A stretch of DNA of 64,000 nt. Source: Macrostomum lignano (lineage: Eukaryota). The number at the start of each line of letters is the position of its first letter. The first letter of the stretch is position 1. Where the stretch lies: assembly GCA_002269645.1 (NCBI GenBank), contig NIVC01000282.1, positions 310,001 through 374,000 of the forward strand, in the 5' to 3' direction. Below, piece after piece: positions 5,154 to 44,059 of the stretch. Under the pieces are notes generated by a model. That model was given only the letters and a program-made list of their open reading frames with translations, had not been told where the DNA came from and ran no database searches. Position numbers and translations under genes: made by a program.

Positions 5154-7117
5154 CTACTTTCGCGACACTTTCCTGCTGTTTATCGCAGCGGCCGCAGCCT
5201 CGGCGGCTTTTGCGGCGCTGGCGGCCTGGCGTGCGGCAGATTCGGCCCTCTTTGCCAGCCTCTTGGCCTCCGCGGCGGCCTTCGCTGCCGAGGCGGCAGC
5301 AGCAGCGGAGGCGGCTACAGCGGTGGTCGATTCGGCATTAGAGTTTGAGGCACAGTCTGGCTCGCTGTGGCTGCTGGCGCTGGCTCCGCTGTCATTATTG
5401 GACTGTAGTGAAGGTCAAGGTTGTGGGAGGTCAGTAAGTGGTTGTGGCGTTTCATATTGGAATGGGGTCGGGGATGGGGTTGGGGGAGATTCGTGAATGA
5501 TTGGGTTGGGGGAGATTCGTGAATGATGGGATTGGGGAAGATTCGTGATTCGTGAATGATGAGGATAGGGGAGATTAGTGAATGATGGGGATAGGGGAGA
5601 TTAGTGAATGATAGGGATAGGGGAGATTAGTGAATGATAGGCATAGGGGAGATTAGTGAATGATGGGGTTGGGGGAGATTCGTGAATGATGGGGTTGGGG
5701 GAGATTAGTGATTCGTGAATGATGGGGATAGGGGAGATTAGAGAATGATGGGGTTAGGGGAGATTAGTGATTCGTGAATGATGCAGATAGGGGAGATTAG
5801 TGAATGATGGGGTTGGGGGAGATTAGTGAATGATGGGGCTGGGGAGATTAGTGGATGATGAGGATGGGGAGATTAGTGGATGATGGGGATGGGGAGATTC
5901 ATGAAGGATGGGGCTGGTGTCGAAGATTCTGGATTCGGGCAATACAAAGAGCTTACACTAGCGGAGCCAGACTCTTCGTCAGTATCCGAAATCTCTTCCA
6001 GTTCGCTCTCGTCAGAGTCTGCAACAATTGAAAGCGAATGCGGCGCCGACCCGGCCGTTTCCTGACTGTCTTGCTGATTAGCGGCGCACTTCGGACATTC
6101 CGGCCGGCGAATTCGCAGATTAATTTGCAACAGATTATCTTCGGACGCCTCCAGGTAGACGGGCACCTCGGAGCGGAAGTTCAGCTTGAGCGTCAGCCGG
6201 TGCGGGCAGCTGCCAGCGGGCGGGAACACCAGGTTGCAGGCCTTCTGCCGCCGTCTCACCACCAGGCCGGGGCACTGCGATTGGAGTCGCTGATAGTCCA
6301 ATCTAGTGGTGAACAGCAGCTGGGGAATCATCACCTGCGATTGCGGTTGGGTTGGGTGAGGACTGAGCGTCAGGAAAGGAGAGACAGGGTGAGATAGAAG
6401 ATTAACCAGACCAAGGAACCAGGTCAGGTGAGACTAGGAACCAGGTCAGGTGAGACTAGGAACCAGGTCAGGTGAGACTAGGAACCAGGTCAGGTGAGAC
6501 TAGGAACCAGGTCAGGTGAGACTAGGAACCAGGTCAGGTGAGACTAGGAACCAGGTCAGGTGAGACTAGGAACCAGGTCAGGTGAGACTAGGAAGCAGGT
6601 CAGGTGAGACTAGGAACCAGGTCAGGGTGAGACTAGGAACCAGGTAATGAGGTGAGACTAGGAAGCAGATCAGGCAAGACTAGGAAGCAGGTCAGGCGAG
6701 ACTAGGAAGCAGGTGAGGTGAGACTAGGATCTAGATCAGGTGAGACTAGGAACCAGGTAATGGGGTGAGACTGGGGTGATGGGGTGAATGGGGTGAGAAC
6801 CAGGTAATGAGGTGAGACTAGGAACCAGGTAATGAGGTGAGACTAGGAACCAGGTGAGGTGAGAGCCACCCCAGTTACTCTAGTATCTGTGGGTGAGACG
6901 CGGCTACTGATGAGAAGAGCTGCAAGAACTAAGCTAGCAGCGAGCCCAAACCTCCATGCCGAGCCGGCCGACAGACTTGGCAAACGCGAAGCCCTCGCTT
7001 GGCCCGGTGGCGCGCAGGAAGGCGGCATAGAATAGCTGGGAGCTGCGCTCGGACGCTCGCTTGGCGCTGATGCGCCACCTGTTGCACCACATGGCCTGGG
7101 CTTCCACCTGATCGGCC

Positions 7118-7153
<36 letters not shown>

Positions 7154-10100
7154 GTCGTCGGCGACGACAGGCCGAGCGCTCCGACCAGCTGTCGATGAAC
7201 CAGCAAGTCGGCGTATCGACGTATAGGCGAAGTGAAATGCGTGTACACTGGGAACTTCAAAGCGAAATGCCGCCAAGAGTCCCGATCCGGGTGGTAGCCG
7301 GTGCAGATGTACTCGGCCAGGGACATCTGCATGATGGCCAGGGTGGCTGCGAAGCTGCGGAATTGCGGGTCGTCCGACTGCTCGGCCAGGAAGTCGTTCA
7401 GCTTCAGCATGATCTCGGTTGATGATGCTGCCAGATTGTTGTTGCCGGGCGAGCCGGCCGCTGCTGAGGGTGGGGGGGGGGCGACAGTATCCTATATGCG
7501 TAAATAAGATCAACTGGAGGAGGACAAAGGTCAATAGGGTCACTGATGTTGAGGGGGTAGGTCACTGGTACATATGGGTCATTGGTATTGATATGCCACT
7601 GGTATCCATGGGGTCACTGGTATAGCTAGGTCACTGGTATAGCTAGGTCACTGGTATTGATGGGGTTACTGTTACAGATGGGGTACTGTTATAGATGGGG
7701 TACTGTTATAGATGGGGTACTGTTATAGATGGGGTACTGTTATAGATGGGGTACTGTTATAGATGGGGTACTGTTATAGATGGGGTACTGTTATAGATGG
7801 GGTACTGTTATAGATGGGGTACTGTTATAGATGGGGTACTGTTATAGATGGGGTCACTGGTATTGATGGTTCACTGGTAAAGATTGGGGTCACTGGTATC
7901 GGTGGGGTCACTGGTATCTGTGGGGTCACTGGTATCCATGGGGTCACTGGTATTTCTGATATCGCTGAGGGTAACGGGTACCGTGGGTCACAAGGTCACG
8001 GCAAGGTAATAAATCTAGCACAAACAAAACCCACAAACCTTGCAGAATGGACCTAGCCGCCTTGCTGCCATTCCCAGAATTCTCAGCCCCATCTTCGGCG
8101 GACTCAACCACCACTCGGGCCAGCGACACCAGAGTCTCCGCCAGGCCGCGCGGATCTCTGGGCGGAGGGTGCCGACGGAGCAGGGCCACGTCCGGGGCCT
8201 CCTTGACCAGCGTCTCTGCCGCGGCAACGTTGGCTTTGAGCATCCACTCTTCGACTAGCTGGTGCGACCATTCAGCATCCTCTTCCTTCATCAGCTGGGG
8301 CACGCCGTTGACACCGTCCGGGCAGGTGAACTGCAACTTGTTGGCCACACTGAAGCCGAGGGCGGCCTTCGATAGGCGCTCCTTGCGAAACTTTTTAGCC
8401 AACTGATGCAGCTGGCGCAGAGTTGTGCGCACCTGCCGACCGGAGAAAGGGCTGGACACCTCCGATGGGAGGAACTCGTCCGAGTTGAGCATCTGCTCGG
8501 CCTCCTCGTACGATAGACGGCAGCAGGACTTGATGATGGACTTTGCAAAGCTGCGGTATTTGAAATTGGATTTAGAAGTGAAGTTAGGCACATACAAGCG
8601 TAGCAATACTGTAAGCAGACACGCACTCTACACACGCTCATCCAGGGTGTACACAGCGGTCCTGACTTTCTAATCGTCAGACATGTACAGTCTCTGTGCC
8701 TTGGGGGTTGGGCCTCATGGGTGGACCAATTTTCGTGCACACAAGCCCCAAGCCGCGCACAGAATCAAACCAATGGTTCTGCTCCCTAAATAATGCCTAA
8801 ACAATAATCCTAATGTTCCAGGTAGATTGCCTCGAGAGTTGACGATAGGAACGGTCTATCCCTATTTAGTTGCGTACTAACCGCACTCAACTCTGCTTAA
8901 CTTGCAGGACTAGCAACTAAGCAACTCTATTAAGTTAAGCTAAGTCGGCCGCGGTTAGCACGCAGCTGAAAGGCGCCATATTGAGCTGAGCTGTTGAAAT
9001 TGAACTCTCACCGGTAACTCTGCACGTCGCCTTTGAGGCCAATCTGAAAGATGACGGAGAAGGCCAGCTTCTCTTCGCCGGGATGCAGCGAGCAGTAGCC
9101 GTTGCTCAACGCCTCTGGCAGCATCGGGATTACCCGCTGAACCAGGTAGACTGAGGTGGACCGGCGACGGGCCTCTCGGTCGAGGGCCGACTCTGACGGC
9201 ACAAAGTGCGACACGTCGGCGATGTGGACACCCACCTGGGTTTGAAAAATCGAAAATATCACCCTGCTGCATGACCTGGTATGACCTTTGCTCGCAGAGC
9301 TTCTAACAAAGAAGAAATAATAGAAACTGATCGGAAGCAGATTATCTAAAGTAAAAAACCAGGGATTTTGAAGGAAATTGGAGGATCAGGGATTCTAGGG
9401 GAAATTGGGGATCTGGGATTCTAGGGGAAATTGGGGGATCTGGGATTCTAGGGGAAATTGGGGGATCTGGAATTCTAGGGGAAATTGGGGGATCTGGGAT
9501 TCTAGGGGAAATTGGGGGATCTGGGATTCTAGGGGAAATGGGGGATCTGGGATTCTAGGGGAAATTGGGGGATCTGGGATTCTAGGGGAAATTGGGGGAT
9601 CTGGGATTCTAGGGGAAATTGGGGAATCTGGGATTCTAGGGGAAATTGGGGGATCTGGGATTCTAGGGGAAATTGGGGGATCTGGGATTCTAGGGGAAAT
9701 TGGGGGATCTGGGATTCTAAGGAAGATTGGGGGATCTGGGATTTTAGGGGGAAATTAGGGGATCTGGGATTCTAAGGGAAATTGGGGGATCTGGGATTCT
9801 AGGGGAAATTGGGGGATCTGGGATTCTAAGGAAGATTGGGGGATCTGGGATTTTAGGGGAGAAATTAGGGGATCTGGGATTCTAGCAAAGATCAATGGAT
9901 CTGGGATTCTAGGGGGAAATTAGGGGATCCGGGATTCTAGCGAAGATCAATGGATCTGGGATTTAAATAACAAACAAGAGCACCAGGTATTTAGGGAAAA
10001 TACAGGAACTGGGATTTGATAGGGAAAATTTAGGAGCTGAAATTTAGGAAAAACCTGAGGATCTGCGATTTAGGACAACCAGAGGATGGGATTTAAGGAA

Positions 10101-13100
10101 AACGAAAAAGTCTATGATCGGATCGGAAACACCATCATTGCAAACTTTTACCTCATAGCAACCGTTTCCATGGGATTTGACGTGCAAAGCGTCGTCCAGA
10201 TCTCTAGCCGTGGCCGGGTCAATCGATACAACGCACCGATCGGTGAAATCCTCCCGATCTTTCCTGTCCTGCTTGGTGATGTAGAAAGTCTTGGCCACAT
10301 CCTCCAGCGCTGCCGGGGGGAACGGCAGCTCCTCGATGCCAGTCTCCACCAGGATGGCCTGCGTGGCGCCCTCGATGGTGGCCACGTCGGTGTTCAACGG
10401 CAGAACCTCCGCCACTGGGCGCAGCAGGTGGCTCGGCCAGTCCACCATCTGCGGGTGTTACGTGGATGAAAGAGAGGGCCCAGGGGTCAATAAGGTCACG
10501 GGCCTCACAAAGATTCAACGAGGTTAGGGGCTAAGGTCATGGGCCCCAGTGAGAGGTCAATGAGGTCACGGACTACATACAGTGAGGGGTCAATGAGGTA
10601 ATAGGCTAAAGATTTAATAGGCTAAAGATAGGGGTCAAGGTCACGGATTACAAATAGTGAGGGGTAAATGAAGTCATGGGGGTTCAGTAAGAGGTCAATG
10701 AGATCACGGGGCCTTAGTGAGGGGTCAATGAGGTCAAAGACCTCAGTGACAGGTCAATGAGGTCATGAGCTAAAGATACAGATCAAGGTCACGGGCTAAG
10801 AATAGTGAGGGATCAATGAAGTCACGGTGGTTCAGCGAGTGGTCGATAAGGTCACTGGGGCTCAGTAAAAGTTTAATGAGGTCCAGGGGGCTCAGTAAGG
10901 GTTTAATGAGGTCCAGGGGGCTCAGTAAGTGTTTAATGAGGTCCAGGGGGCTCAGTAAGGGTTTAATGAGGTCCAGGGGGCTCAGTAAGGGTTTAATGAG
11001 GTCCAGGGGGCTCAGTAAGGGTTTAATGAGGTCTAGGGGGCTCAGTAAGGGTTTAATGAGGTCACGAGGGACATTTAAGGGTAATGCAGCCAATTAGCAA
11101 ACCTTCACAGCCACGGTGTAAGCCTCTCCGGCCAGGCCCATGTCCACATTTTTCTGCAGCTGCCGTTTAACCTCCAGGCCCATGAACAGTGGGTGCACCG
11201 GCACCAGCATGAGCGGCACCCGGCGGTCGCGCGGCTTGAACAGGGCTGCCCGACCGCTGCGGTGCATGGACAGGCTGCCAACGAAGCATTTGTTATTGAA
11301 TGACGACACAATGCGAACAACTTCGCCTGTCATCACTAAGCCGGCTTGGCACAGCAAATTAATCTGCTCATGACTCATAAATGGGGAGTCGATATCGACC
11401 GGATCCGGGACAATCTCAGCGAGAAAGTTGGGACGGCGTTTCAATTCCGACTCGACTGTGGGACCGCTCAGGCCCAGGGTCCATTGGCGGATGGGGAGCA
11501 GGTGGACCGCCACTTGGTCGCGGTCCAGGGCCCGGTTCATGGCCTCGCCTGAGCGGATGGCGATCATCTTGCCCTGCGGGTGATTTGTGGGTCAGCGTGA
11601 CAGCCAGTGAGTCAGCTAGTGACAGCAGGTGAGTCAGCTATAACAGGCGAGTCAGCTAAGGTGAGTCAGCTAGTGACAGCAAGTGAGTCAGCTATAACAG
11701 GTGAGTCAGCTATAACAGGTGAGTCAGCTAAGGTGAGTCAGATAGTGACAGCAGGTGAGTCAACTAGTGACAGCAGGTGAGTCAGTAGTGACAGCAGGTG
11801 AGTCAGTAGTGACAGGTGAGTCAGTAGTGACAGGTAAGTCAGCTAGTGACAGCAGGTCAGTCTGCTAGTGACAGCAGGTGAGTCAGCTAGTGACAGCAGG
11901 TGAGTCAGCTAAGATGAGTCAGCTAGTGACAGCAGGTGAGTCAGCTAAGATGAGTCAGCTAGTGACAGCAGGTGAGTCAGTAGTGACAGGTGAGTCAGTA
12001 GTGACAGGTAAGTCAGCTAGTGACAGCAGGTCAGTCTGCTAGTGACAGCAGGTGAGTCAGCTAGTGACAGCAAGTGAGTCAGCTATAACAGCAGGTGAGT
12101 CAGCTAAGGTGAGTCAGCTAGTGACAGCAGGTGAGTCAGCTAAGATGAGTCAGCTAGTGACAGCAGGTGAGTCAGCTAAGGTGAGTCAGCTAGTGACAGC
12201 AGGTGAGTCAGTTATAACAGCAGGTGAGTCAGCTAAGATGAGTCAGCTATAACAGCAGGTGAGTCAGCTAAGATGAGTCAGCTATAACAGCAGGTGAGTC
12301 AGCTAAGATGAGTCAGCTAGTGACAGCAGGAATGAAATCCTGATCTAGCGACAGTTAAAAGTATGAACCAATAAGAAGTAAAAAGGAGATCATAGCCTAG
12401 CGCACTCACCTGCCACTTGCAGATGGCCAGACTACCAGGATTAATGACGGTGAAATAGCATAACATGAGGTGATTAGCTCGCATCCCTTTGCCAAGCATT
12501 CTGGCGTCCCAGTGGTCCTTGAAATTCTGCAATTCGATTTTCATATGTTTTCGGTTATAAGCAACAGAAGGGCCAGTGTAAAACAAGACAACTCGTTCCA
12601 ATTTTAATGGAAACATGTAACATGTAAATATGCTCGTACATGTAACAAAGAACGCAATTTGTTGAACTAAACCAGACACTAAAACTCGGACAATGCTCTT
12701 ACAAAACAGCGGGTGTGTTTGTCTAACATTCTCAGCTGACGATCTCTTGATAATTGCAATGCTTCGAAATCTTTTGCCGTTTCAGTCTGAAGTACTTCGG
12801 TAAGATAATATGGTGATTGAATTTGTGCTGTTGTTCACCTGTTTTCTTCTACCTTTGACTCATCACTGAGAAGAGTTGGGTAAGTAGGATGAAGATAGGA
12901 AAATGGAAGAGAGAAGTCGGTTCTGATGTGAAGTGCCTTTGGAGTGAGGTGGTTGCGGAGTGAGGTGGGTGAGGGACTGAGGTGGTTGAGGGAGTGAGGC
13001 GGTTGCGGAGTGAGGTGGGTGAAGGAGTGACGTGAGTGAGGGAGTGAGGTGGGTGAGGGAGTGAGGCGATTGCGGAGTGAGGTGGGTGCGGAGTGACGTG

Positions 13101-14955
13101 ATTGAGGGAGTGAGGTGGGTGAGAGAGTGAGGTAAATGAGAGAGTGAGGTGGTTGCGGAGCTAGTGGTTGCGGCGTGAGGTGGGTGAGGGAGTGAGGTGG
13201 GTGAGGGAGTGAGGTGGGTGTGGGAGTGAGGTAAATGAGAGAGTGAGGTGGTTGCGGAGTGAGGTGGTTGCGGCGTAAGGTGGGTGAGGGATTCAGGTGG
13301 TTGCGGAGTGAGGTGGTTGCGGAGTGAGGTGGTTGCGGAGTGAGGTGGGTGAGGGATTCAGGTGGTTGCGGAGTGAGGTGGGTGAGGGATTCAGGTGGTT
13401 GCGGAGTGAGGTGGGTGAGGGATTCAGGTGGTTGCGGAGTGAGGTGGGTGAGGGATTCAGGTGGTTGCGGAGTGAGGTGGGTGAGGGATTCAGGTGGTTG
13501 CGGAGTGAGGTGGGTGAGGGATTCAGGTGGTTGCGGAGTGAGGTGGGTGAGGGATTCAGGTGGTTGCGGAGTGAGGTGGGTGAGGGATTCAGGTGGTTGC
13601 GGAGTGAGGTGGGTGACGGATTTAGGTGGTTGCGGAGTGAGGTGGGTGACGGATTTAGGTGGTTGCGGAGTGAGGTGGGTGAGGGATTCAGGTGGTTGCG
13701 GAGTGAGGTGGGTGACGGATTCAGGTGGTTGCGGAGTGAGGTGGGTGAGGGATTCAGGTGGTTGCGGAGTGAGGTGGGTGAGGGATTCAGGTGGTTGTGG
13801 AGTGAGGTGGGTGAGGGATTCAGGTGGTTGCGGAGTGAGGTGGGTGACAGATTCAGGTGGTTGCGGAGTGAGGTGGGTGAGGGATTCAGGTGGTTGCGGA
13901 GTGAGGTGGGTGACGGATTCAGGTGGTTGCGGAGTGAGGTGGGTGAGGGATTCAGGTGGTTGCGGAGTGAGGTGGGTGCAGATCAAAGCGGGCTAGACAC
14001 GGGCTGCTACAGGCCACTCACAGCGGTCATTCCAGGCACGGTGAGGCCGGCAATATGCGCCAGTTTCTGTTCACGCAGTCGCATCTCGGCGGAGGTTGGC
14101 TCGGGCGCCAATTCGATGAGTCGGTGCTCCGCATCTATGGAACTGATCACCTCCTCGGCGTGGCGCATGTCGGCCTCTTCGACGTCTTCGACTGCGGCGG
14201 CGGTGGCGGAATCAGCAGTTGATTCAGTTAATAAGTCCGGCGACACGGCGCTTGCAAACCGGTTGACGACGGGCGCTGGGGCCTCCTAAAATCGTGGCGC
14301 ATGAATTTTTAATTCTTATCGATAAAAAGCATTACTTTGTCTCACGTACGAACTTTCAGAAGTCAGCGGAATGAGAAGAATCGTCTCAGCGCTGGTTTCG
14401 GGACAATGTCACCAAATCCATTGCACCAGGGTGCCCGCAGCCCACTTGCAAATATGATTTATTACTTGGTTACAGAAAAACAGCGCTCACCGGCTCAGCC
14501 AGCTGCCCCTCCTTGCCAACCGCTCCGCCGCCCGCCGCAGCATTGGAGTCCGGAGCAGTCGGCCGCTCGCCCCATCCCAGCGCTGAGCGGATCACGGATA
14601 GCAGCGGCTTGGAGCCGCCAGCCCCGCTTGCCGAGGACAGCCTCTGCTGCCGGCCGCGCAAGTAGCCGCCGCTGCCGCCTCCGCCAACGACCCCGCCGCC
14701 GCCTTGCCGCGTGTCCGCCCAGGATCGCAAAATCTGCCGGTTCAAAGCTGTCGGCGTTGACGACGAAGTCGAGGACCTTCGACCGGCGAAGCCACCGCCG
14801 CCGCCGCCGCCAGATGACGAGGCTGGGGCGCGTTGAATAGCGAGCATCCCGCGGCGCCGATGCCAGCAATAGCTGCAGTAAATAACGCTACTGTTATTAT
14901 TGTTATAATTAGCAAAGCGCGCATAGCGATAGCATAACGGCGCGCGCCATAGCAT
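5154..14955 (-). CDS. Divergent DIS3L2-like RNase II/R-family 3'-5' exoribonuclease (paralog A, about 1162 aa) with N- and C-terminal extensions
   Basis: Exons 14955-14491, 14285-14022, 12526-12410, 11573-11103, 10448-10152, 9235-9012, 8550-8039, 7463-6952, 6334-5957, 5402-5154, all phase-compatible. Motifs: [10 protein letters not shown] (CSD), [15 protein letters not shown] (catalytic Asp cluster of DIS3L2 type), [43 protein letters not shown]. No PIN domain. An in-frame TGA upstream of ATG 14955 fixes the start. Confidence 0.88.
5460..5900. repeat. About 26-bp minisatellite (aggggagattagtgaatgatggggat)
   Basis: Intron of DIS3L2 paralog A. Confidence 0.9.
6410..6870. repeat. 22-bp minisatellite (aggtcaggtgagactaggaacc)
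   Basis: Intron of paralog A. The unit contains CAG|GTGAGA on the + strand. Confidence 0.95.
7540..7960. repeat. 17-bp minisatellite (gatggggtactgttata) with ggtcactggtat variants
   Basis: Intron of paralog A. Confidence 0.9.
9385..9960. repeat. 27-bp minisatellite (gggaaattgggggatctgggattctag)
   Basis: Intron of paralog A. Confidence 0.95.
10480..11075. repeat. 30-bp minisatellite (gggggctcagtaagggtttaatgaggtcca)
   Basis: Homogeneous near 10850-11060 and degenerate leftwards. Confidence 0.9.
11595..12330. repeat. About 22-bp minisatellite (caggtgagtcagctagtgacag)
   Basis: Intron of paralog A. The unit contains CAG|GTGAGT on the + strand. Confidence 0.95.
12940..13980. repeat. 33-bp minisatellite (gaggtgggtgagggattcaggtggttgcggagt)
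   Basis: Highly homogeneous at 13320-13980; source of the repetitive ORFs. Confidence 0.95.
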
Positions 14956-15089
14956 TATTGCGCGTCTCGGTCAGAGGCAGAGAGCCGTCCCGCTGGCAAT
15001 GAATGGCTGGGAAGCAGAAAAAAATCGATAAAATGATTTATGGTATTTTTTTGAAATTGTCAATACTTACACTGAGTTTCTAAGTCTTG

Positions 15090-15850
15090 AGTTTTACTAA
15101 CTGAATATCCTGAGTTTTACTAACTGAATATCCTGAGTTTTACTAACTGAATATCCTGAGTTTTGCTAACTGAATATCCTGAGTTTTACTAACTGAATGT
15201 CCTGAGTTTTACTAACTGAATGTCCCGAGTTTTACTAACTGAATGTCCTGAGTTTTGCTAACTGAAGGTCCTGAGTTTTGCTAATTAAATGTCCTGAGTT
15301 TTGCTAACTGAAGGTCCTGAGTTTTGTTAACTGAATATCCTGAGTTTTGCTAACTGAATATCCTGAGTTTTGCTAACTGAAGGTCCTGAGTTTTACTAAC
15401 TGAATGTCCTGAGTTTTACTATCTGAATGTCCTGAGTTTTGCTAACTGAATGTCCTGAGTTTTACTAACTGAATGTCCTGAGTTTTGCTAACTGAATATT
15501 CTGAGTTTTGCTAACTGAATATCCTGAGTTTTACTAACTGAATATTCTGAGTTTTGCTAACTGAATATCCTGAGTTTTACTAACTGAATATCCTGAGTTT
15601 TGCTAACTGAATATCCTGAGTTTTGCTAACTGAATGTCCTGAGTTTTGCTAACTGAATGTCCTGAGTTTTGCTAATTGAATGTCCTGAGTTTTGCTAACT
15701 GAAGGTCCTGAGTTTTGCTAACTGAATATCCTGAGTTTTGCTAACTGAAGGTCCTGAGTTTTGCTAACTGAATGTCCTGAGTTTTGCTAACTGAATATCC
15801 TGAGTTTTACTAACTGAATATCCTGAGTTTTGCTAACTGAATGTCCTGAG
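15090..15850. repeat. 23-bp minisatellite (ctgagttttgctaactgaatatc)
   Basis: Upstream of the paralog A start. Confidence 0.95.
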
Positions 15851-16269
15851 TCTTCATTCGGACATCTTCGCAAGTTTCGATTCAAGATTCGAAGTCCTTG
15901 CAAACCTGTAGAATTACCTGCTGATCGAGTAATCAGGTAATAAATTTAAGATCAAATTTAGTCCGCTATACAGCAAAATTATATCAGGATCAAATGTATC
16001 TTGGATGGACCAGTCATTAACAAAAATCATAGAAACTTTGTCTATGTAGGACAATATTTACAAAAACTGAGAAATTAAAACAGAATTATCAATTTACATG
16101 AACGAATAAGATATGGAAACTGTCTATTACAGATCCTCGTATGCATTATATAATTGCTATGACATAATCCTTAATCTCTAATCCATTTTTAAACATATGC
16201 AAATTATTTTCTAAAGTGAATAATATATTTTAGAAAAATTTATAAGATTTAAAAGATTATCAGAATCCT

Positions 16270-19900: not shown

Positions 19901-19945
19901 AATGTGGAATATGAAGATGAAAACAGAACAAAAATGGACAGACAA

Positions 19946-20000
<55 letters not shown>

Positions 20001-20003
20001 CTA

Positions 20004-20060
<57 letters not shown>

Positions 20061-20095
20061 GTCAGACAGACAGACAGACAGACAGACAGACACTA

Positions 20096-20140
<45 letters not shown>

Positions 20141-20199
20141 CTAAGACAGACAGACAGACAGACAGTCAGACAGACAGACAGACAGACAGACAGACACTA

Positions 20200-20264
<65 letters not shown>

Positions 20265-20267
20265 CTA

Positions 20268-20300
<33 letters not shown>

Positions 20301-20304
20301 CTAC

Positions 20305-20368
<64 letters not shown>

Positions 20369-20371
20369 CTA

Positions 20372-20448
<77 letters not shown>

Positions 20449-20451
20449 CTA

Positions 20452-20488
<37 letters not shown>

Positions 20489-20491
20489 CTA

Positions 20492-20562
<71 letters not shown>

Positions 20563-20567
20563 GACTA

Positions 20568-20615
<48 letters not shown>

Positions 20616-20882
20616 GGGCAGATAGGCAGACAGACAAAAAGACAGACGGGCAGATAGGCAGACAGACAGACAGACAAACAGACAGACGGGCAGATAGGCA
20701 GACAGACAGACAGACAAAAAGACAGACGGGCAGATAGGCAGACAGACAGACAGACAAAAAGACAGACGGGCAGATAGGCAGACAGACAGACAGACAAACA
20801 GACAGACGGGCAGACAGACAAACAGACAGACGGGCAGATAGGCAGACAGACAGACAGACAAACAGACAGACGGGCAGATAGG

Positions 20883-20934
<52 letters not shown>

Positions 20935-20941
20935 GACTAAA

Positions 20942-20975
<34 letters not shown>

Positions 20976-33206: not shown

Positions 33207-36200
33207 TTAACAGCCGGTGCCCACCGGAGTGTCGCACAGGTCGCATGACGGAGGCTTCAACAGCAGTTTCAGCCGCATGGGGTCGTCTTTGCTCAGGCAG
33301 CTGGACACGACCACCTCTATGGTGGACATTGGGCACAGCGTCAGGTGGTGGCTGGCCGAGTGGCAGCCGTTGAAGTGCAGACTGAGCTGGCCGCAGCCCT
33401 GTGGAGGGGTTCAAGTGCGACTGTAGATGGAGGCAACTGAGGATCTGGGAGGCTGGCCCAGCAACTGGGGATCTGGGAGGCTGGCCCAGCAACTGAGGAT
33501 CTGGGAGGTTGGCCCAGCAACTGAGGATCTGGGAGGCTGGCCCAGCAACTGAGGATCTGGGAGGTTGGCCAAGCAACTGAGGATCTGGGAGGCTGGCCCA
33601 GCAACTGGGGATCTGGGAGGCTGGCCCAGCAACTGAGGATCTGGGAGGCTGGCCCAGCAACTGAGGATCTGGGAGGTTGGCCCAGCAACTGAGGATCTGG
33701 GAGGCTGGCCCAGCAACTGGGGATCTGGGAGGCTGGCCCAGCAACTGAGGATCTGGGAGGCTGGCCCAGCAACTGGGGATCTGGGAGGCTGGCAAGCAAC
33801 TGGGGATCTGGGAGGCTGGCCCTGAGGATCTGGGAGGCTGGCCCAGCAACTAGGGATCTGGGAGGCTGGCCCAGCAACTGAGGATCTGGGAGGCTGGCCA
33901 AGCAACTGAGGATCTGGGAGGCTGGCCCAGCAACTGGGGATCTGGGAGGCTGGCCCAGCAACTGAGGATCTGGGAGGCTGGCCCAGCAACTGAGGATCTG
34001 GGAGGTTGGCCCAGCAACTGAGGATCTGGGAGGCTGGCCCAGCAACTGGGGATCTGGGAGGCTGGCCCAGCAACTGAGGATCTGGGAGGCTGGCCCAGCA
34101 ACTGGGGATCTGGGCGGCTGGCCCAGCAACTGGGGATCTGGGAGGCTGGCCCAGCAACTGAGGATCTGGGAGGCTGGCCCAGCAACTGGGGATCTGGGCG
34201 GCTGGCCCAGCAACTGGGGATCTGGGCGGCTGGCAAGCAACTGGGGATCTGGGCGGCTGGCCCAGCAACTGGGGATCTGGGAGGCTGGCAAGCAACTGGG
34301 GATCTGGGAGGCTGGCCCTGAGGATCTGGGAGGCTGGCCCAGCAACTAGGGATCTGGGAGGCTGGCCCAGCAACTGAGGATCTGGGAGGCTGGCCCAGCA
34401 ACTGAGGATCTGGGAGGCTGGCCCAGCAACTGAGGATCTGGGAGGCTGGCCCAGCAACTGGGGATCTGGGAGGCTGGCCCAGCAACTGGGGATCTGGGCG
34501 GCTGGCAAGCAACTGGGGATCTGGGAGGCTGGCCCAGCAACTGGGGATCTGGGCGGCTGGCAAGCAACTGGGGATCTGGGAGGCTGGCCCAGCAACTGGG
34601 GATCTGGCTTGTGTTTGCCAAAGCAGGAAGAGGCTAATCCGACCCCACCTGCACAGCGCCAGCCCTGAACTCGTGCGACTTGCGCAGCATTGGCGCCTGC
34701 TGATCCATGTAGAGGCGGCGCACCAGTCCGCAGCGGGTGAGCAGGACGTCCATGGCTTTGTCCAGGACGCCAATAACAACGCCGACTTCGTCTAGGGGGC
34801 CGTTAGCAATCACAAAGGCGGCATAGTGCAAGTCAATGCTCCGCTCGCCGGCCTCCTTGGCGTCCTTCTTTTTCTTGTTGCAGACTTGCGCCTGGTCTGT
34901 TAGGCTCTCAACAGTCTCTGCCTGGAGATTTTTTATGGTAGCATGACGTTAAAGGTAAGAATTAGCTTCTTTGCATAATAGCTAATGATTAATGAGGATG
35001 GGTTAATGATAAGAATAAATATTATTCATTTTTCAATACTACTTGCAGTAGTAGGTTAGCTAAAACACTAAATTCATTTTCAATACTACTTGCAGTAGTA
35101 GGTTAGCTAAAACACTAAATTAATTTTCAATACTACTTGCAGTAGTAGGTTAGCTAAAACACTAAATTCATTTTCAATACTACTTGCAGTAGTAGGTTAG
35201 CTAAAACACTAAATTCATTTTCAATACTACTTGCAGTAGTAGGCTAGCTAAAACACTAAATTCATTTTCAATACTACTTGCAGTAGTAGGCTAGCTAAAA
35301 CACTAAATTCATCTTCAATACTACTTGCAGTAGTAGGTTAGCTAAAACACTAAATTCATTTTCAATACTACTTGCAGTAGTAGGCTAGCTAAAACACTAA
35401 ATTCATTTTCAATACTACTTGCAGTAGTAGGCTAGCTAAAACACTAAATTCATTTTCAATACTACTTGTAGTAGTAGGCTAGCTAAAACACCAAATTTAG
35501 TTTGAATACTACTTGAAGTAGTAGGTTAGCTAAAAAACAACACTACTAAAGCAGAATGATAAAATAGAGCACAACAGAGACAACATGCCGCACCAGCTGA
35601 ACAACAGACTGGTCCAGCTCGAGGCCGGAGTCGCTGCACACCGCGGCGCACAGCTGCCTGTGCACGACAACATCCGCGTAGCGACGTATCGGAGACGTGA
35701 AGTGGGTGTAGAGCGGCACATTCAGAGCGTAGTGCCGCCACAGCTCCGGATGCTTAGCGGAGCCGATGCAGAAGTACTTGGCAAGCTGCATTTGCTTTGC
35801 GCACAGGCTTAGCAAGCAGAGGTGCTGCTCGGAGTCCAGTACCTGTGCGGCCTGCAGTTTTTAATGGGGCGAACAAATTGGGGTTAAGAAGGTTGTGGGA
35901 TACTTTTTGGGTAGTTTCAACGGGTAGTTTGGGAAGCTTTTGTTAGTAGTTTGGAGGATTTTCTTCGGGTAGTTTTGAGAGATGCTTTGCGGCAGTTTTG
36001 AGAGATGCTTTGCGGCAGATTTGAGACATTCTTTGCGGCAGTTTTGAGAGATGCTTTGCAGCAGTTTTGAGAGGTGCTTTCCGGCAGATTTGAGACATTC
36101 TTTGCGCAGTTTTGAGAGATGATTTGCAGCAGTTTTGAGAGGTGCTTTCCGGCAGATTTGAGACATTCTTTGCGGCAGTTTTGAGAGATGCTTTGCAGCA

Positions 36201-39200
36201 GTTTTGAGAGGTGCTTTCCGGCAGATTTGAGACATTCTTTGCGCAGTTTTGAGAGATGCTTTGCAGCAGTTTTGAGAGGTGCTTTCCGGCAGATTTGAGA
36301 CATTCTTTGCGCAGTTTTGAGAGATGCTTTGCAGCAGTTTTGAGAGGTGCTTTCCGGCAGATTTGAGACATTCTTTGCGCAGATTTGAGAGATGCTTTGC
36401 AGCAGTTTTGAGAGGTGCTTTCCGGCAGATTTGAGACATTCTTTGCGCAGTTTTGAGAGATGCTTTGCAGCAGTTTTGAGAGGTGCTTTCCGGCAGATTT
36501 GAGACATTCTTTGCGCAGTTTTGAGAGATGCTTTGCAGCAGTTTTGAGAGGTGCTTTCCGGCAGATTTGAGACATTCTTTGCGCAGATTTGAGAGATGCT
36601 TTGCAGCAGTTTTGAGAGGTGCTTTCCGGCAGATTTGAGACATTCTTTGCGCAGTTTTGAGAGATGCTTTGCAGCAGTTTTGAGAGGTGCTTTCCGGCAG
36701 ATTTGAGACATTCTTTGCGCAGTTTTGAGAGATACTTTGGGGAAGTTTTTAAAGATACTTTGCGTTAGTTTTGAGGGATGCTTTGCTGTTTACAGATTTT
36801 TTAGTAGGTTAGATATTATGATTTATGGTCAGTTTTGATATGGTTCTAGTACTTGTCCCAGGCTGGCCTGCAGGGTGCCAGATGAGCCCACATCCAGCTG
36901 CACTCCCAGAGCACTCGAAGTCTTCTTCAAAGCCTGCAGCGCCCGCTCCGACGGCGGCATGTGGCGCCTTAGAAATGCCAAATCTGGCTGAGAGTCGCGC
37001 AGCTTATGCGCCACAGAACAGTTGGCTAATAGCATGAACTCTTCAATCATTCTGTTGCTGTCTTTCAGCTCGTACACGGAGAATGCAATTGGCGGCGCGG
37101 AGGCGCCAGCATCGGCGCCGTCGGTTGGCGCCTCTGCCAGTCGGAAGGTCAGACGCGGCTGATCGATTCGAAGGGCGCCGTCGGTGAACCGTTGGCGGCG
37201 TAGTTTAACAGCCAGACTGTGCATGGCGCGCACGCTATCGGCCACGGATTGCACGGTGTGCGGCGCTTCTACCCGGGCCGAGGCGCGGCGCAGGTCCGAC
37301 ATGAGAGCGACCTCTTCGGTATTGTTGGAGCCGGATTCCTTCTGGCCGGCTGCATCAGCCACCTGCGGCAATTGGAGGGGCGGTTTAGGGGAATTTGAAG
37401 GCTCGAAGGGGCGATTGTTAATGCCAGTTGAACCATGTGGCGACTCTAGATGTGGTTTACAGCCAAATCTAGGTGGCTTACAGGCGACTCTAGAGGTGGC
37501 TTACAGGCGACTCTAGAGGTGATTCACAGCCAAAACTAGAGGTTGTTTACAGGCGACTCTAGCGGTGATTTACAGGCGATCTAAAGGTGGCTTACAGGCG
37601 ATTCAAGGGGTGGTTTACAGGCGACTCTAGCGGTGGTTTACAGGCGATCTAGAGGTGGTTTACAGCCGATCTAGAGGTGGCTTACAGGCGATCTAGAGGT
37701 GTTTTACAGGCGACTCTAGCGGTAGTTAACAGGCGATCTAGAGGTGGTTTACAGGCGATCTAGAGGTGGTTTACAGGCGATTTAGAGGTGGGTTACAGGC
37801 GACTCTAGCGGTGGTTTACAGGCGACTCTAGCGGTGGTTTACAGGCGATCTTAGAGGTGGTTTACAGGCGACTCTAGGGGTGTTTTACAGGCGATCTAGA
37901 GGTGGTTTACAGGCGATCTAGAGGTGGCTTACAGGCGATCTAGAGGTGTTTTACAGGCGACTCTAGCGGTAGTTAACAGGCGATCTAGAGGTGGTTTACA
38001 GGCGATCTAGAGGTGGTTTACAGGCGATCTAGAGGTGGTTTACAGGCGATCTAGAGGTGGTTTACAGGCGATCTAGAGGTGGTTTACAGGCGATTTAGAG
38101 GTGGTTTACAGGCGACTCTAGCGGTGGTTTACAGGCGATCTAGAGGTGGTTTACAGGCGATCTAGAGGTGGTTTACAGGCGATTTAGAGGTGGTTTACAG
38201 GCGATTTAGAGGTGGTTTACAGGCGATTTAGAGGTGGTTTACAGGCGATCTAGAGGTGGTTTACAGACGACTCTAGAGGTGATTTTTGGACGATTATAGA
38301 GGCAGTCCAAGCTCAGTCGGACCCTACTCCTAAACACACCTGAGCATCTCCGCCCAGGTCCACTTCTTGCGGCTCCCGCATATCGGAATGGCCCTCAATA
38401 AAGTGCTGCGCGTGCTGGTAGCTCAGCTGGCAGCAGGACCGAATGATAGACTTGCCGAACCAAGTAGATTTAAGCTCGCAGCTGTTGGGATCAATTCGCC
38501 AAACAACGCTAAACGCAAGTTTGTCTTCGCGCGGATTCAACGAGCACAGCTGTTCGCATAGACGGCGCGGCAGCATTGGATAGGCCCGCTGCACCAAGTA
38601 GGTGGTGGTGGCCCTGGCGCGTGCGACGGCGTCCACTTTGGAGCCGGGCCGAACGTAGTGGGACACGTCCGCGATGTGTACACCAACCTGGTTGGGGGGG
38701 GGGGGTTCCATAGTTGCTAAGTGTTACTCACTGCACCGGGAGAAAGTTATATCTCAAGTATAAATTTTACAGACAAATTGTCATCGTCACTCACTTCAAC
38801 AGAAAGATGACTAAAACTGCCTAAAATGCCACTCCAGCAGACAAAATATCCCTCTAGCAGAATCAATGTTTCTTCAGCAGACTAAATCTCACTCCAGCAG
38901 ACTAAATCTCACTCCAGAAGACTAAATCTCACTCCAGCAGACTAAATGTCACTCTAGCAGACTAAATTTCACTCCAGCAGACTAAATGATTTCACTACAG
39001 CAGACTAAATGATTTCACTACAGCAGACTAAATGATTTCACTACAACAGACTAAATGATTTCACTACAGCAGACTAAATGATTTCACTACAACAGACTAA
39101 ATGATTTTACTACAGCAGACTAAATGATTTCACTCCAGCAGACTAAATGATTTCACTACAGCAGACTAAATGATTTCACTACAGCAGACTAAATGATGTC

Positions 39201-42200
39201 ACTACAGCAGACTAAATGATTTCACTACAACAGACTAAATGATTTTACTACAGCAGACTAAATGATTTCACTCCAGCAGACTAAATGATTTCACTACAGC
39301 AGACTAAATGATTTTACTACAGCAGACTAAATGATTTCACTACAGCAGACTAAATGATGTCACTACAGCAGACTAAATGATTTCACTACAGCAGACTAAA
39401 TGATTTCACTACAGCAGACTTAATGATTTCACTCCAGCAGACTAAATGATTTTACTACAGCAGACTAAATGATTTTACTACAGCAGACTAAATGATTTCA
39501 CTCCAGCAGACTAAATGATTTCACTACAGCAGACTAAATGATTTCACTACAACAGACTAAATGATTTCACTACAGCAGACTAAATGATTTCACTCCAGCA
39601 GACTAAATGATTTCACTACAGCAGACTAAATGATGTCACTACAGCAGACTAAATGATGTCACTACAGCAGACTAAATGATGTCACTACAGCAGACTAAAT
39701 GATGTCACTACAGCAGACTAAATGATGTCACTACAGCAGACTAAATGATGTCACTACAGCAGACTAAATGATGTCACTACAGCAGACTAAATGATGTCAC
39801 TACAGCAGACTAAATGATGTCACTACAGCAGACTAAATGATGTCACTACAGCAGACTAAATGATGTCACTACAGCAGACTAAATGATGTCACTACAGCAG
39901 ACTAAATGATGTCACTACAGCAAACTAAATGTCACTCTAGCAGACTAAATGTCACTCCAGCAGACTAAATGTCACTCCAGCAGACTAATGTCACTCTAGC
40001 AGACTAAATGTCACTCCAGCAGACTAAATGTCAGCTAAGTAAACCGTCAGCTTAATATCCTAAAAGAAGGGGGGCAGCTGCCACTCTTTGCCCCGTTCCT
40101 CGGTACGTGAGCACCACACCAACAATGATACCATATCAGAGACTGGAACAAACCTCGCAGTCCCCAGACCCGTCGTCCAGCTCCCGAAAGTGTACAGCGT
40201 CGTCCAAATCTCTGGCCGTTTCCGGGTCCACGGTGAACACGCAGTACCGGCTGGGATCTCGGAAATCCCGCCTGCGAGAAACTTCATCACTGTCGATATC
40301 GGCGGAAATTTCGGCCACCTCGGCCAATGTGTCCGGTTCGAAATCTTCAGCATCGATGCTGTGATGCTCGAGTATGACTCTGGTCTCCAGTTCGAGATCA
40401 ATGCGGCCGGCCGCCCGGTTGCCAAGCTGGCGAGAGATTCGAACCTGCGGCATCCGACACTCTGGACGCCAGTCGTTGGCCAGCTCGGCTACGAATAGGG
40501 TGCGCTCGAAGTCGCCCGGCCGGCTGGCGAACATCGGCGGCAGGTCGGAGCGGGGCACCAGGCAGCGCGGCTGGCGGGAGTCCAGCGGAGCGAACAGAAC
40601 CATCGGCTGAGGGAGGGGAAGCGAGGACGCGGTGAATGCTTTGGGGGAAGTTGAACAGGTCCCTTTCGCGTTAGAAATTGGTCACTCTCGTTACGCGTAG
40701 AAATAGGTCACTCTCTCGTTACGCGTAGAAATAGGTGTAAAAACAGGCGTAAAAACACAAAATGCCGTCAATCTCAGAGTTTAGGCACTCACAGAAAGCA
40801 ATTATATGTGAGCAATCATCTCACCTGATTAGAACTGTTGCCAGGCTTCACGTAGCCAACAAACCTCCTATTAGCTAGCTGGCGAACAATGGCCACCACC
40901 TGACCGATTCGTTGCACTTTGTCAACTGGTAAAGGCTGGCACGGGTCTGCGTTGGATTTCAGTATGGCAGCAATTGCCGACTCCTCGCCATTGTCGCCTT
41001 CGCCCTCGCCGTCGTCGTCGCCCCGACTGTCCGGATAGACAACGCCAGGGAACAGTTCGGCGAAGGTGGCCTGACCGCTGGCTAGGACAGACTCCACCGT
41101 CGGCGGCTGCTGCTGCTGGCCGAACTTCGACGGCGTCGATTCGATGTCGAGGCCAGCAGCGCTGCTGGGGTCCAGGCCGATGACCCGCCAGCTCGCGACC
41201 TGGCGACGCATGAAAGGCACATTATTGACAATTCAGTGACACATTTAGCGGCACTCTAGTGACGCTTCAGTGACACATTTATCGACACTCTAGTTAGTGA
41301 CAAGTCGGTGACACATTTAGTGACAAATCAATGATACATTTAGCGACACTCAGTGACAATTCAGTGACACATTTAGCGACACTCTAGTGACAATTCAGTG
41401 ACACATTTATCGACACTCTAGTGACGCTTCAGTGACACATTTATCGACACTCTAGTGACGCTTCAGTGACACATTTATCGACACTCTAGTGACGCTTCAG
41501 TGACACATTTATGGACACTCTAGTTAGAGACAAGTCAGTGACACATTTATCGACACTCTAGTGACGCTTCAGTGACACATTTATGGACACTCTAGTTAGA
41601 GACAAGTCAGTGACACATTTATCGACACTCTAGTGACGCTTCAGTGACACATTTATGGACACTCTAGTTAGAGACAAGTCAGTGACACATTTATCGACAC
41701 TCTAGTGACGCTTCAGTGACACATTTATGGACACTCTAGTTAGAGACAAGTCAGTGACACATTTATCGACACTCTAGTGACGCTTCAGTGACACATTTAT
41801 GGACACTCTAGTTAGAGACAAGTCAGTGACACATTTAGTGATAAATCAGTGACACATTTAGCGGCACTCTAGTGACACATTTAGCGGCACTCTAGTGACA
41901 GATCAGTGACACATTTAGCAACATTCTAGTGACAAAAAATCATGCCACAACTTACCGGCTTGATACGCAGAGCGACTTCGTCGTCATTAAGCGCCCTATT
42001 GCGATCAATCAGGCTGGTAATTAGAATGTCGGAATCGCCGTTCGGATGACTAACAAACGCTTCTTCGAAATTTCTCTGACTAATTCGCACCTGGCCAGTG
42101 ATTAACTCGCCAGAAGCCAGACCGGCGGACACCTCCTGATTAAGAAAGAGAAAATATTTATTGAGTATAAAGTGCACAAATAGCAAGCTGTTTATGTCTG

Positions 42201-44059
42201 AAGGTCAGCTTCTGATTTTCATAAAAAATAGCTTTAGCATTCTTAATTGCTACTGAATTGAAAGTAGCAACTCTAATACAGTTGATGGAGAGGCCTGGGT
42301 GGAGTTCATGCAGTGTCCTCATGGCAACCCATGACTCTACAGGAGGCACAGAGAAGCAGCTCAGCTGGATAATGCCTTCCTAACTCTCAGGCCAAATCAT
42401 GTAGTCACATTGATTTGTAGATCTTGCCAACAAGTTTGGGCTTTTGAGTCCAAGGTTGTAGCCTAGTCGCTAGAGTGTCGGACTCACGACTGAAAGGTCG
42501 GGGGTTCGATTCTCGACCCGATCGGAACAATCTGTGTCCTTGAGCAAGACAACTTAACTCTGCATTGCTTCAGTTCACCAAGCTGTAAAATGGGTGCCAG
42601 CATTAGCTGGGCAATTGACGGTGTGTGTGGCGACCCCCCAGTCCTTGGACTGAACAGCCGTACGCAGCCTTCAGATGCGCCGCGCAATGGCTGCGGCTGA
42701 GCTGTCCGTTGCACATCTGCCCATTGGGGCAGGCGTAATTAATTATTATTGTATTATTACCGACGATCAGAAAGCCGAGGCATTTATGTCAGTGAACACC
42801 GTGACCCGCGTCCCAGAGTCACTTGCGTCGCGCCAGTTGTTTCAGAATCGTTGCAGGCAACACGTAGGTAAAATAGAAAAGAAGACGACTCTTGAAACGA
42901 CGAGATGTCACGGTACAAGTCGCCAAAAAGTCGCCAAAGAGTCTCCTAAGAGTCTATTTAAGGCGTTTTATTGTCTGCGACCCTGGGCGCCGGAGTCGCA
43001 TCTGAGGCGTGCCCGAGTGGCTGCAGAACCGCTGAGTTGCGTCTAAAGCGCATCAGCGACACTTTATGAATTCAGAATCGCATTTCGCATTGATGACAAC
43101 TCCATTTAGGCTACCTGAGTTAGTAGAAAGTTAATCGCCAACACAACGACTTTTGACGACTTTCTCGCGACTCTTTTAAGATTCTGCAACTCACGTGATG
43201 CACTCGTGACCGAACAGTCGCCTCTTCGTTGCATTGCAGTCGTTTGAGTCATTAAAAAGTCACAAGATTCGCCCCAGAGTCGCTATGAAGTTGTTTGCAA
43301 TGACTCTAGCGATACCCGTTTTCAACGGGTGATCGTGTGCCTACCTACTATCAACCTATCTATAGATACTTCAACAGAGATCTATAAGAAAAAAGTCGCA
43401 GACAACTCCATCTAGACAGTCACCTCGGGTGTCAGGTGAGCTACGAACTGCGACGAAGCGCCGTTGGCGCCACCGCCGCCGCTGCCGAACTGTTGCTGCG
43501 ACTGCCGATGCCCGCCGCGATGCCCAGCGCCAGGATAGGGCTGGCCGCTACTGAACTGCCGCTGCTGCTGCTGATAGTGATGATGCTGACTGGCGCCGCC
43601 ACGGCGACCACCGCGTTTGCCAACATAGCCAGGATACTGATGATGATGATGCTGCTGATGGTGATGATTGGGATTGTAGTGTGGATGGTGCCCGCCACCC
43701 CGATGATGATGATGCTGATGATGATGAGGAGGAGGCTGCGGATATCCCGGAGCGTGATGCGGCGGCGGCGGCGCTGGCGGCAGCTGCGGCAGCTGATGCT
43801 GAGTCGAAGTTGATGAAGAAGCTGCCGCTGCTGCGCTGCACTGCAGCTGAGTCTGGGCGCCAGGCAGCGGCGGGCCCTGCAGCTGGGCACCGGCGCCTTC
43901 GGGCGGACAGCCCGGACGGAACACCAGCGGGACGGAGGCCGCCGTACTAGAAGCGCCGTTCGACGTAGAATTGTTGCCGCATTGCTGCTGCTGCTGCGGC
44001 GATGCAGCTGACTGCTGAGTTTGACTACTCACGTTAGTAGCCTCTGATGAGTCGGACAT
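33207..44059 (-). CDS. DIS3L2: DIS3-like exonuclease 2 (canonical-looking paralog B, about 1071 aa)
   Basis: Exons 44059-43424, 42135-41956, 41199-40825, 40606-40154, 38687-38340, 37362-36853, 35842-35594, 34921-34649, 33398-33207, all phase 0. Motifs: [72 protein letters not shown]. Confidence 0.94.
33435..34605. repeat. 28-bp minisatellite (ggatctgggaggctggcccagcaactga)
   Basis: Last intron of DIS3L2 (B). Confidence 0.97.
35030..35530. repeat. 47-bp minisatellite with internal hairpin (actac-ttgca-gtagt)
   Basis: DIS3L2 (B) intron. Confidence 0.95.
35900..36780. repeat. 68-bp higher-order repeat of three about 22-23-bp subunits
   Basis: ttttgagagatgctttgcagcag / ttttgagaggtgctttccggcag / atttgagacattctttgcgcag; near-identical 68-bp period. 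Confidence 0.95.
37440..38285. repeat. 22-bp minisatellite (tagaggtggtttacaggcgatc)
   Basis: DIS3L2 (B) intron. Confidence 0.95.
38870..40025. repeat. 23-bp minisatellite (cagcagactaaatgatttcacta)
   Basis: DIS3L2 (B) intron, with a homogeneous gatgtc-variant block at about 39620-39915. Confidence 0.95.
41230..41935. repeat. Minisatellite with 72-bp dimeric higher-order unit (agtgacacatttat...)
   Basis: DIS3L2 (B) intron. Confidence 0.9.
42454..42760 (+). mobile_element. tRNA-derived SINE with CORE-like central domain
   Basis: Pol III A-box-like TAGCCTAGTCGCTAG and B-box GGTTCGATTC. These are followed by tgtgtccttgagcaagacaacttaactc...cttcagttcaccaagctgtaaaatggg, which resembles the MIR CORE, and a (TTA)-rich tail. 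Confidence 0.75.
42790..43329. mobile_element. Second, longer copy of the same CCC-TIR MITE family
   Basis: Shares long blocks with 24652-25012 (e.g. cccagagtcacttgcgt, gattctgcaactc.cgtgatgc.ctcgtgac, gttgcattgcagtcgtttgagtcatta) and the right end cgttttcaacggg. The left end is degenerate. Confidence 0.72.

Follow-up and report, generated by a model that had tools for sequence, protein, structure and literature searches.

The stretch of DNA considered here, 64,000 nucleotides (nt) of the flatworm Macrostomum lignano (contig NIVC01000282.1 of assembly GCA_002269645.1, positions 310,001 to 374,000; hereafter the window), carries two genes for RNA exonucleases of the DIS3L2 type. We refer to them as gene A and gene B, a pair already noted in the first-pass annotation of this DNA; they lie on the same strand, with about 18 kb between them. 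DIS3L2 is a cytoplasmic, exosome-independent RNB exonuclease of animals and fission yeast that prefers oligo(U) substrates (structures 4PMW, 8E27-8E2A, 4RO1 and 9CY7). The earlier annotation had further proposed that gene A encodes a protein with a mitochondrial-presequence-like N-terminus, retargeted to mitochondria after the duplication, and the present analysis is concerned with what kind of enzyme A is and whether its N-terminus can bear that interpretation.

Gene A was rebuilt independently by linking open stretches on the minus strand through phase-compatible GT/AG pairs, without use of the earlier model, and the same length and N-terminus as in that 1162-residue model were recovered. 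The gene occupies 14955..5154 of the minus strand and consists of ten exons (3489 nt, 1162 amino acids (aa)) with no frameshift or internal stop, and all of its splice sites are canonical GT-AG (Table 1). The donors, in order, are GTGAGC, GTGAGT, GTGAGT, GTTTGC, GTAAAA, GTGAGA, GTTTGT, GTTTGG and GTAAGC, several of which agree with the donor consensus GT[G/A]AG described for M. lignano (PMC8629364). At the junction of exons 1 and 2, a strong donor, CCG/GTGAGC (last base 14491), meets the acceptor GATTTTAG/GAG (first base 14285) in phase 0. The earlier claim that exon 1 has a single frame able to splice in phase was confirmed, as only the frame beginning MLWRAPL is open from the ATG to the donor, while the other two of the three frames stop at 14742 and 14498. 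When the exons of the RNB region were used as a query, the best matches were three UniRef models of M. lignano named 'RNB domain-containing' (P0001-P0003), which map onto the window at 97-99% identity in frameshift-broken pieces. The junctions 14491/14285, 8039/7463 and 5957/5402 of gene A are shared by the UniRef models. In-frame codon-usage scores of exons 2-10 range from 0.29 to 0.72, calculated with a table trained on the other genes of the window. All but two of the nine gene A introns contain a minisatellite array, as does the spacer towards ATG7, and these arrays yield long spurious open reading frames (ORFs) in several frames. Similar arrays are suggested in the introns of gene B (e.g. 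33076-34779 and 35861-36789), as judged from ORF translations only, with no repeat scan.

Table 1. Features of the window, with positions counted from its first letter
Feature	Position	Strand	Remarks
Gene A exon 10	5154..5402	-	Ala/Lys-rich C-terminal tail, one long predicted helix; stop 5156-5154
Gene A exon 9	5957..6334	-	S1-like C-terminal OB domain (AlphaFold strands 939-1029), acidic Ser-rich stretch
Gene A exon 8	6952..7463	-	RNB; HFTSPIRRY (7239-7213), 11-Gln run
Gene A exon 7	8039..8550	-	RNB; junction also in UniRef model P0001
Gene A exon 6	9012..9235	-	RNB
Gene A exon 5	10152..10448	-	RNB start, four-Asp motif at 10220-10191
Gene A exon 4	11103..11573	-	Remaining CSD1 and CSD2; Pfam OB_Dis3 at residues 392-475
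Gene A exon 3	12410..12526	-	Start of cold-shock domain 1; AlphaFold strands 263-289
Gene A exon 2, codons 156-243	14022..14285	-	Acidic Ala-rich linker; coding score 0.47
In-frame alternative starts in gene A exon 2	M194 (14171), M222 (14087)	-	
Gene A exon 1, codons 1-155	14491..14955	-	Arg-rich acid-free start, then Gly/Ser/Arg-rich low complexity; AlphaFold predicted local distance difference test (pLDDT) <50
In-frame TGA	14971..14973	-	15 nt upstream of the gene A ATG
Possible 64-nt intron in the 5' untranslated region (GTAAGT ... TTTTTTTCTGCTTCCCAG), or its acceptor alone as a spliced-leader trans-splice site	15007..15070	-	Perfect donor; acceptor with pyrimidine tract and CAG, 52 nt upstream of the ATG; putative, from sequence
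Minisatellite arrays in gene A introns	5473-5917, 6414-6858, 7558-7953, 9373-9940, 10857-11063, 11607-12330, 12941-13978		Period 17-36 nt, 7-60 copies, 74-97% matches
Minisatellite array in the spacer between ATG7 and gene A	15084-15851		Within the same ranges
ATG7 (ATG7_N, ThiF)	16916-22249	-	
DPF-type double-PHD protein (DPF1-3_N, PHD)	23819-24394, 29711-30085	-	
Q/H-rich ORF	28991-29539		May belong to the DPF gene
Gene B, conservative DIS3L2 paralog	33207..44059	-	About 1074 aa, 9 modelled exons; junctions B6/B7 and B7/B8 uncertain
DJ-1/PfpI protein	45264-46739	-	
Phosphofructokinase	59309-63313	-	

As modelled, protein A is an enzyme of the DIS3L2 type with a complete CSD1-CSD2-RNB-S1 funnel, a complete catalytic site and no PIN domain. 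Pfam recognises the RNB domain at residues 504-880 (E 3.4e-94) together with a Dis3-type CSD2, and the same scan detected no PIN domain. At E ≤ 0.001, neither CSD1 nor Dis3l2_C_term was found in A, whereas both were found in B; the corresponding beta-structures are present in the AlphaFold model of A. The catalytic motifs had been described as intact, and they are: the four magnesium-binding aspartates D516, D522, D524 and D525 are kept in the pattern DxxxxxDxDD, and HFTSPIRRY is unaltered. The query made of the RNB-region exons returned the RNB proteins of M. lignano first and then DIS3L2 of many animals, and all named top matches were DIS3L2. Among structures in the PDB, DIS3L2 (4PMW) ranked highest (7.6e-89), followed by RRP44 (2.5e-69), RNase R (2e-52), DIS3L1 (1.3e-46) and, far below, Dss1 (6F3H; 4e-7), with human (8E27-8E2A) and S. 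pombe (4RO1) DIS3L2 as further matches. The AlphaFold model, built with 33 homologs, has a predicted template modelling score of 0.68 and is confident in its core, roughly residues 244-1040; this core superposes on mouse and human DIS3L2 with template modelling (TM) scores of 0.87-0.88 over about 800 columns, compared with 0.44 for Dss1. Because Pfam, the PDB ranking and the superposition agree, A is to be regarded as DIS3L2-type and not as a relative of Dss1, and the suggested convergence on a Dss1-like degradosome is not supported, A being structurally a DIS3L2. Two other assignments were tried and rejected: DIS3 or DIS3L1, on the absence of a PIN domain and the lower scores, and a Dss1 ortholog, on the remoteness of the similarity.

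Comparison with known systems leads to the same placement. Like A, DIS3L2 enzymes combine CSD1-CSD2-RNB-S1 without the PIN domain (DIS3 and DIS3L1 have PIN and CR3), keep all catalytic residues and, in many members, possess a basic N-terminal tail. Unlike typical DIS3L2, A has an N-terminal tail of about 240 residues, two insertions in the RNB domain, a run of 11 Gln and an Ala-rich helical C-terminal tail. The last three are lineage-specific: the RNB insertions are of low confidence (residues 743-813, window ~8159-7378); the Gln run lies just past HFTSPIRRY (residues 888-898, window ~7152-7120), and the Ala/Lys-rich C-terminal tail (residues 1109-1161, window ~5315-5157) is predicted as one 50-residue helix. 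Mitochondrial RNA decay had been described in the first-pass annotation as the work of PNPase-SUV3 in animals and of Dss1 in yeast, and this matches the published picture, in which animals use PNPase-SUV3, fungi and kinetoplastids Dss1-Suv3, and plant organelles RNR1 (PMC9181182). Dss1, or mtEXO (6F3H, 6F4A), which works with Suv3, resembles A in having RNB catalytic and S1 domains, but carries beta-barrel, winged-helix and helix-turn-helix domains in place of the cold-shock domains (PMC9181182), while A keeps both CSD1 and CSD2. An organellar precedent is plant RNR1, an RNase R-like enzyme dual-targeted to chloroplasts and mitochondria that retains CSD1-CSD2-S1 and coexists with PNPase (PMC9181182). 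However, RNR1 descends from bacterial RNase R and A from the eukaryotic DIS3L2 lineage, RNase R ranking below both DIS3L2 and RRP44 among the matches of A.

Gene B provides the measure against which the divergence of A can be judged. Pfam finds CSD1, CSD2, RNB and Dis3l2_C_term in B, which is only 31% identical to A over 870 residues and differs from it in some intron positions. B outscored A against every one of 117 DIS3L2 proteins from outside Macrostomum (median 469 versus 305 bits), even though these had been chosen as the best matches of A, not of B. At 169 columns that are conserved in at least 90% of the 117 homologs, B keeps 153 residues and A keeps 130; 39 of the 169 conserved positions (23%) are changed in A, including seven that are invariant in all 117 homologs. 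Several of the changed positions lie in the RNA path of the RNB domain, where, for example, the LCEELCSLNP segment is replaced. In a neighbour-joining (NJ) tree that included no named flatworm DIS3L2 besides those of Macrostomum, A and B came out as a sister pair in 107 of 200 bootstraps, and the longest branch was that of A. On these sequence comparisons, A is the fast-evolving copy of an old duplication whose constraints have been altered, and B the conservative ortholog. M. lignano is reported to be a hidden polyploid with a recent genome duplication (PMC10468722). At 31% identity, A and B represent an old duplication and not copies from such a recent event. A literature search returned nothing on DIS3L2 in Macrostomum.

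Both paralogs begin with long tails, although of different make-up. Like A, B has a long, disordered, acid-poor N-terminal tail; unlike A, it retains most conserved positions and all four Pfam domains, and its N-terminus is rich in His, Gln, Pro and Gly, with no detectable similarity to that of A, in agreement with the earlier description of an unrelated His/Gln-rich sequence. The tail of B comprises 212 residues with 4 acidic residues, 8 Arg, 26 His and RGG-type motifs, whereas the tail of A contains GRR, RRG and RGR motifs. In exon 1 of B (43412-44059, minus strand), long His runs are mixed with Gln and Pro. The tail has no internal Met, so the whole of it must be translated if gene B is.

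The proposed resemblance of the A N-terminus to a mitochondrial presequence stood with regard to composition and fell short with regard to residue arrangement and predicted helicity. The first 80 residues do contain 11 Arg and no Asp or Glu, as had been stated, and the first acidic residue is D81. The maximum hydrophobic moment was 0.53 over 11 residues and 0.30 over 18 residues, below nine of ten classical presequences used as controls (0.48-0.83 and 0.41-0.70, respectively), whose sequences are approximate. The moment of A did not exceed that of shuffles with the same composition (p 0.4-0.9), whereas of the ten controls seven lay in roughly the top 10%. AlphaFold assigns residues 1-189 a pLDDT below 50, as expected of disorder, places no helix within residues 1-70 and predicts the first one at residues 72-80. 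Candidate motifs for the mitochondrial processing peptidase (MPP) are RFA (13-15), RSWA (77-80) and residues 73-82. A signal peptide was also considered and rejected, as no hydrophobic core was seen in the modelled frame.

The composition itself is not rare in this DNA. Among 68 ATG-initiated ORFs of at least 80 aa, taken from all six frames of the whole window, five (7%), including exon 1 of A, lack acidic residues up to position 40 and contain eight or more Arg in the first 80 residues. By our judgement of their placement, the four others are antisense to exon 9 of A (6038+), antisense to ATG7 (18103+), in an alternative frame of exon 7 of A (8641-) and at 57560+, and three of these four have a hydrophobic moment above that of A. 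The composition of the A N-terminus thus exceeds chance only weakly, and such peptides arise readily where GC-rich DNA contains trinucleotide repeats, in this case (GGC)n.

Similar tails recur within the family. At least 250 residues precede the NRAL motif of CSD1 in 27 of 116 homologs, and in 11 of 116 the first 25 positions are free of acidic residues. One DIS3L2-family protein (P0005; L001 899-3706, L002 and L003, from Logan and JGI contigs resembling marine metatranscriptome complementary DNA (cDNA)) has 80 acid-free residues of unremarkable amphipathicity; its start is set by upstream in-frame stops, so that its N-terminus is complete and supported by cDNA. Basic N-termini that are acid-free over 41-81 residues occur in the family members P0005, P0006 and P0017, e.g. 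MLKANNCFVRSIWKQSMSKSFHNKRPNL. The NJ tree places P0005 with the tunicate Styela; L001 holds another gene as well, 186 nt upstream in the same orientation. N-terminal tails of this kind, basic, poor in acidic residues and disordered, recur among DIS3L2 proteins. A HMMER search with the exon 1 ORF against 1.84 billion representative proteins matched only P0003 of M. lignano, over residues 41-156; residues 1-40 found no counterpart.

The ATG of gene A is the first AUG, has an A at -3 and is preceded by no other AUG in the 52 nt that follow a strong acceptor-like site, and the in-frame stop that had been placed upstream of it is present. The spliced leader (SL) of M. lignano is 35 nt long, ends in ATG and is added to 30% of genes (PMC8629364); the SL sequence and the SL acceptor motif were taken from the same source. 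A leader spliced at the acceptor at 15007 would, by its terminal ATG, open a 12-codon upstream ORF that ends at the TGA at 14973-14971. Joined to the phase-0 acceptor of exon 2, the leader would initiate translation in frame with exon 1 left out, a speculative route to a short isoform.

Exon 1 has a codon-usage score of 0.038, higher than in either of its other frames, with 0.24 for codons 81-155 and a value at or below zero for codons 1-80. For the latter this test is not decisive: exon 1 of B, of low complexity and certainly coding, is equally flat (0.009). P0003, which derives from an older M. lignano assembly, reads another frame upstream of APASSS and the frame of A downstream of it, a difference that probably stems from an additional C in the CCCC run near 14828. 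Since the assembly behind P0003 is full of frameshifts, the extra C is probably an error; the first 43 codons of A nevertheless depend on the length of one homopolymer. In the P0003 frame, a hydrophobic N-terminus would replace MLWRAPL. The case for translating the N-terminus of A is logical, not statistical.

We consider it probable, at roughly 0.6, that A is a specialised, non-mitochondrial DIS3L2 paralog, intact and expressed-looking, whose basic tail is disordered. The CSD1-CSD2-RNB-S1 fold, the four aspartates and HFTSPIRRY predict exoribonuclease activity: A would be a processive, hydrolytic, exosome-independent 3'-5' exoribonuclease, and it is predicted to thread the 3' ends of single-stranded RNA through the funnel of OB domains into the RNB channel. 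Its substrate range is likely to be specialised or altered relative to that of B, as the 39 differing conserved positions suggest that substrate specificity may have changed. The first ~190 residues probably form a disordered, basic, Gly/Ser/Arg-rich tail comparable to those of B and many DIS3L2 proteins. Such a tail may serve in binding RNA or partner proteins, or in granule, nuclear or sub-cytoplasmic localisation, more likely than in mitochondrial import, and A would most likely act outside mitochondria.

Several points weigh against this assignment. Residues 1-48 start with ML and contain 7 Arg but neither Lys nor acidic residues, which is the composition of a classical presequence. Patterns resembling R-2, R-3 and R-10 cleavage sites occur at residues 10-15, 59-62, 73-82 and 77-80, although they are expected by chance in an Arg-rich sequence. 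Three of the ten genuine presequence controls also fail the shuffle test, so the amphipathicity result is a weak negative and not an exclusion. Finally, the altered conserved residues of A fit any change of substrate or compartment.

It is possible, though doubtful, that the N-terminus of A is mis-modelled or isoform-dependent, such that the main mRNA is used without translation of codons 1-40, or possibly of codons 1-155 to 1-193. Transcription might start, or a spliced leader be joined, at the exon 2 acceptor; initiation might take place at M37, M194 or M222; or the frame might be wrong in the C run. This would account for the lack of a codon-usage signal in codons 1-80 when exons 2-10 have one, and for P0003, the only other database copy, which reads a different frame upstream of APASSS, and it fits the HMMER match that begins only at residue 41. 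The ATG-ending leader, found on 30% of the genes of the species (PMC8629364), is consistent with the same explanation, and initiation at M194 would place CSD1 about 50 residues into the protein, as in mammalian DIS3L2. On the other hand, 155 codons are open between a first AUG in good context and the strong GTGAGC donor, which joins exon 2 in phase, and the exon 1-2 junction is the same in P0003. Moreover, P0003 is frameshift-ridden, with an extra C that is probably an assembly error, and the certainly coding exon 1 of B has an equally flat codon score (0.009).

We regard it as unlikely that the N-terminus of A is a cleavable matrix-targeting presequence by which A is imported to supplement or replace PNPase beside SUV3. 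Under this explanation, a DIS3L2 duplicate of the Macrostomum lineage would have gained a matrix-targeting N-terminus and become the first RNB exonuclease in animal mitochondria, beside or instead of PNPase, and a shorter cytosolic isoform might be made through the ATG-ending leader at the phase-0 acceptor of exon 2; we hold such a history to be quite improbable. The acid-free, Arg-rich first 80 residues with their ML start, the candidate MPP motifs, and a first AUG with A at -3 just downstream of an in-frame stop all agree with it, as does the divergence of A, which would be expected upon a change of function. RNB enzymes also act in the mitochondria of fungi, kinetoplastids and plants (PMC9181182). 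Against import stand the weak amphipathicity, indistinguishable from that of shuffles, and the absence of a predicted N-terminal helix; the A-like composition of 7% of the ORFs in the window, antisense frames included; and the similar composition of the tails of B and other DIS3L2 proteins. Residues 1-40 are orphan and without a coding signal, about 150 further residues of poly-Gly/Ser-rich disorder follow the acid-free start, and the fold is that of DIS3L2, not Dss1. We know of no RNB enzyme in animal mitochondria, and the prior for a mitochondrial A is low for this reason. The retargeting put forward in the first-pass annotation accordingly found no support in the amphipathicity, AlphaFold, ORF background, tail and conservation tests, and we think it has little chance of being correct.

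A decaying or non-enzymatic copy, either a pseudonuclease like fungal Ssd1 or an incipient pseudogene, is very improbable: the loss of 39 of 169 conserved positions (seven of them invariant in the 117 homologs), a CSD1 and a DIS3L2 C-terminal domain that Pfam no longer detects, and the precedent of inactive RNase II-family pseudonucleases in fungi (PMC8097288) speak for it, but the four catalytic aspartates and HFTSPIRRY are intact, the ten exons have canonical splice sites, strong coding scores and no frameshift or stop, and a complete fold is predicted with confidence.

The DIS3L2 paralogs are separated by three genes, namely ATG7, the DPF-type double-PHD gene and the Q/H-rich ORF, the last possibly being part of the DPF gene. 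No Pfam match was obtained for the ORFs at 48872-49255 (+), 50617-50973 (-) and 57457-57861 (-). The first of these resembles, by eye, the protease region of a retroelement, and the second may be another DJ-1-like exon (ALVIVTNGTEEIEAVTTADVLVRG). An Rfam scan of the window found no RNA genes.

Were A mitochondrial after all, it would overturn the textbook division between PNPase in the mitochondria of animals and plants and RNB enzymes in those of fungi and kinetoplastids, and it would offer a clean case of retargeting after duplication. As animals use PNPase-SUV3, a mitochondrial DIS3L2 would be new for animals. A literature search returned nothing useful on PNPT1 or SUPV3L1 in flatworms. In GC-rich genomes of low complexity, an Arg-rich, acid-free N-terminus carries little weight by itself. 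The solid result is that M. lignano has a closely spaced pair of DIS3L2 genes that are deeply diverged, and that one of them, its catalytic centre kept, differs at many otherwise conserved positions. Protein A may thus reasonably be considered a candidate enzyme of specialised RNA decay, in a model flatworm that regenerates, is rich in germline and can be studied by RNA interference and transgenesis.

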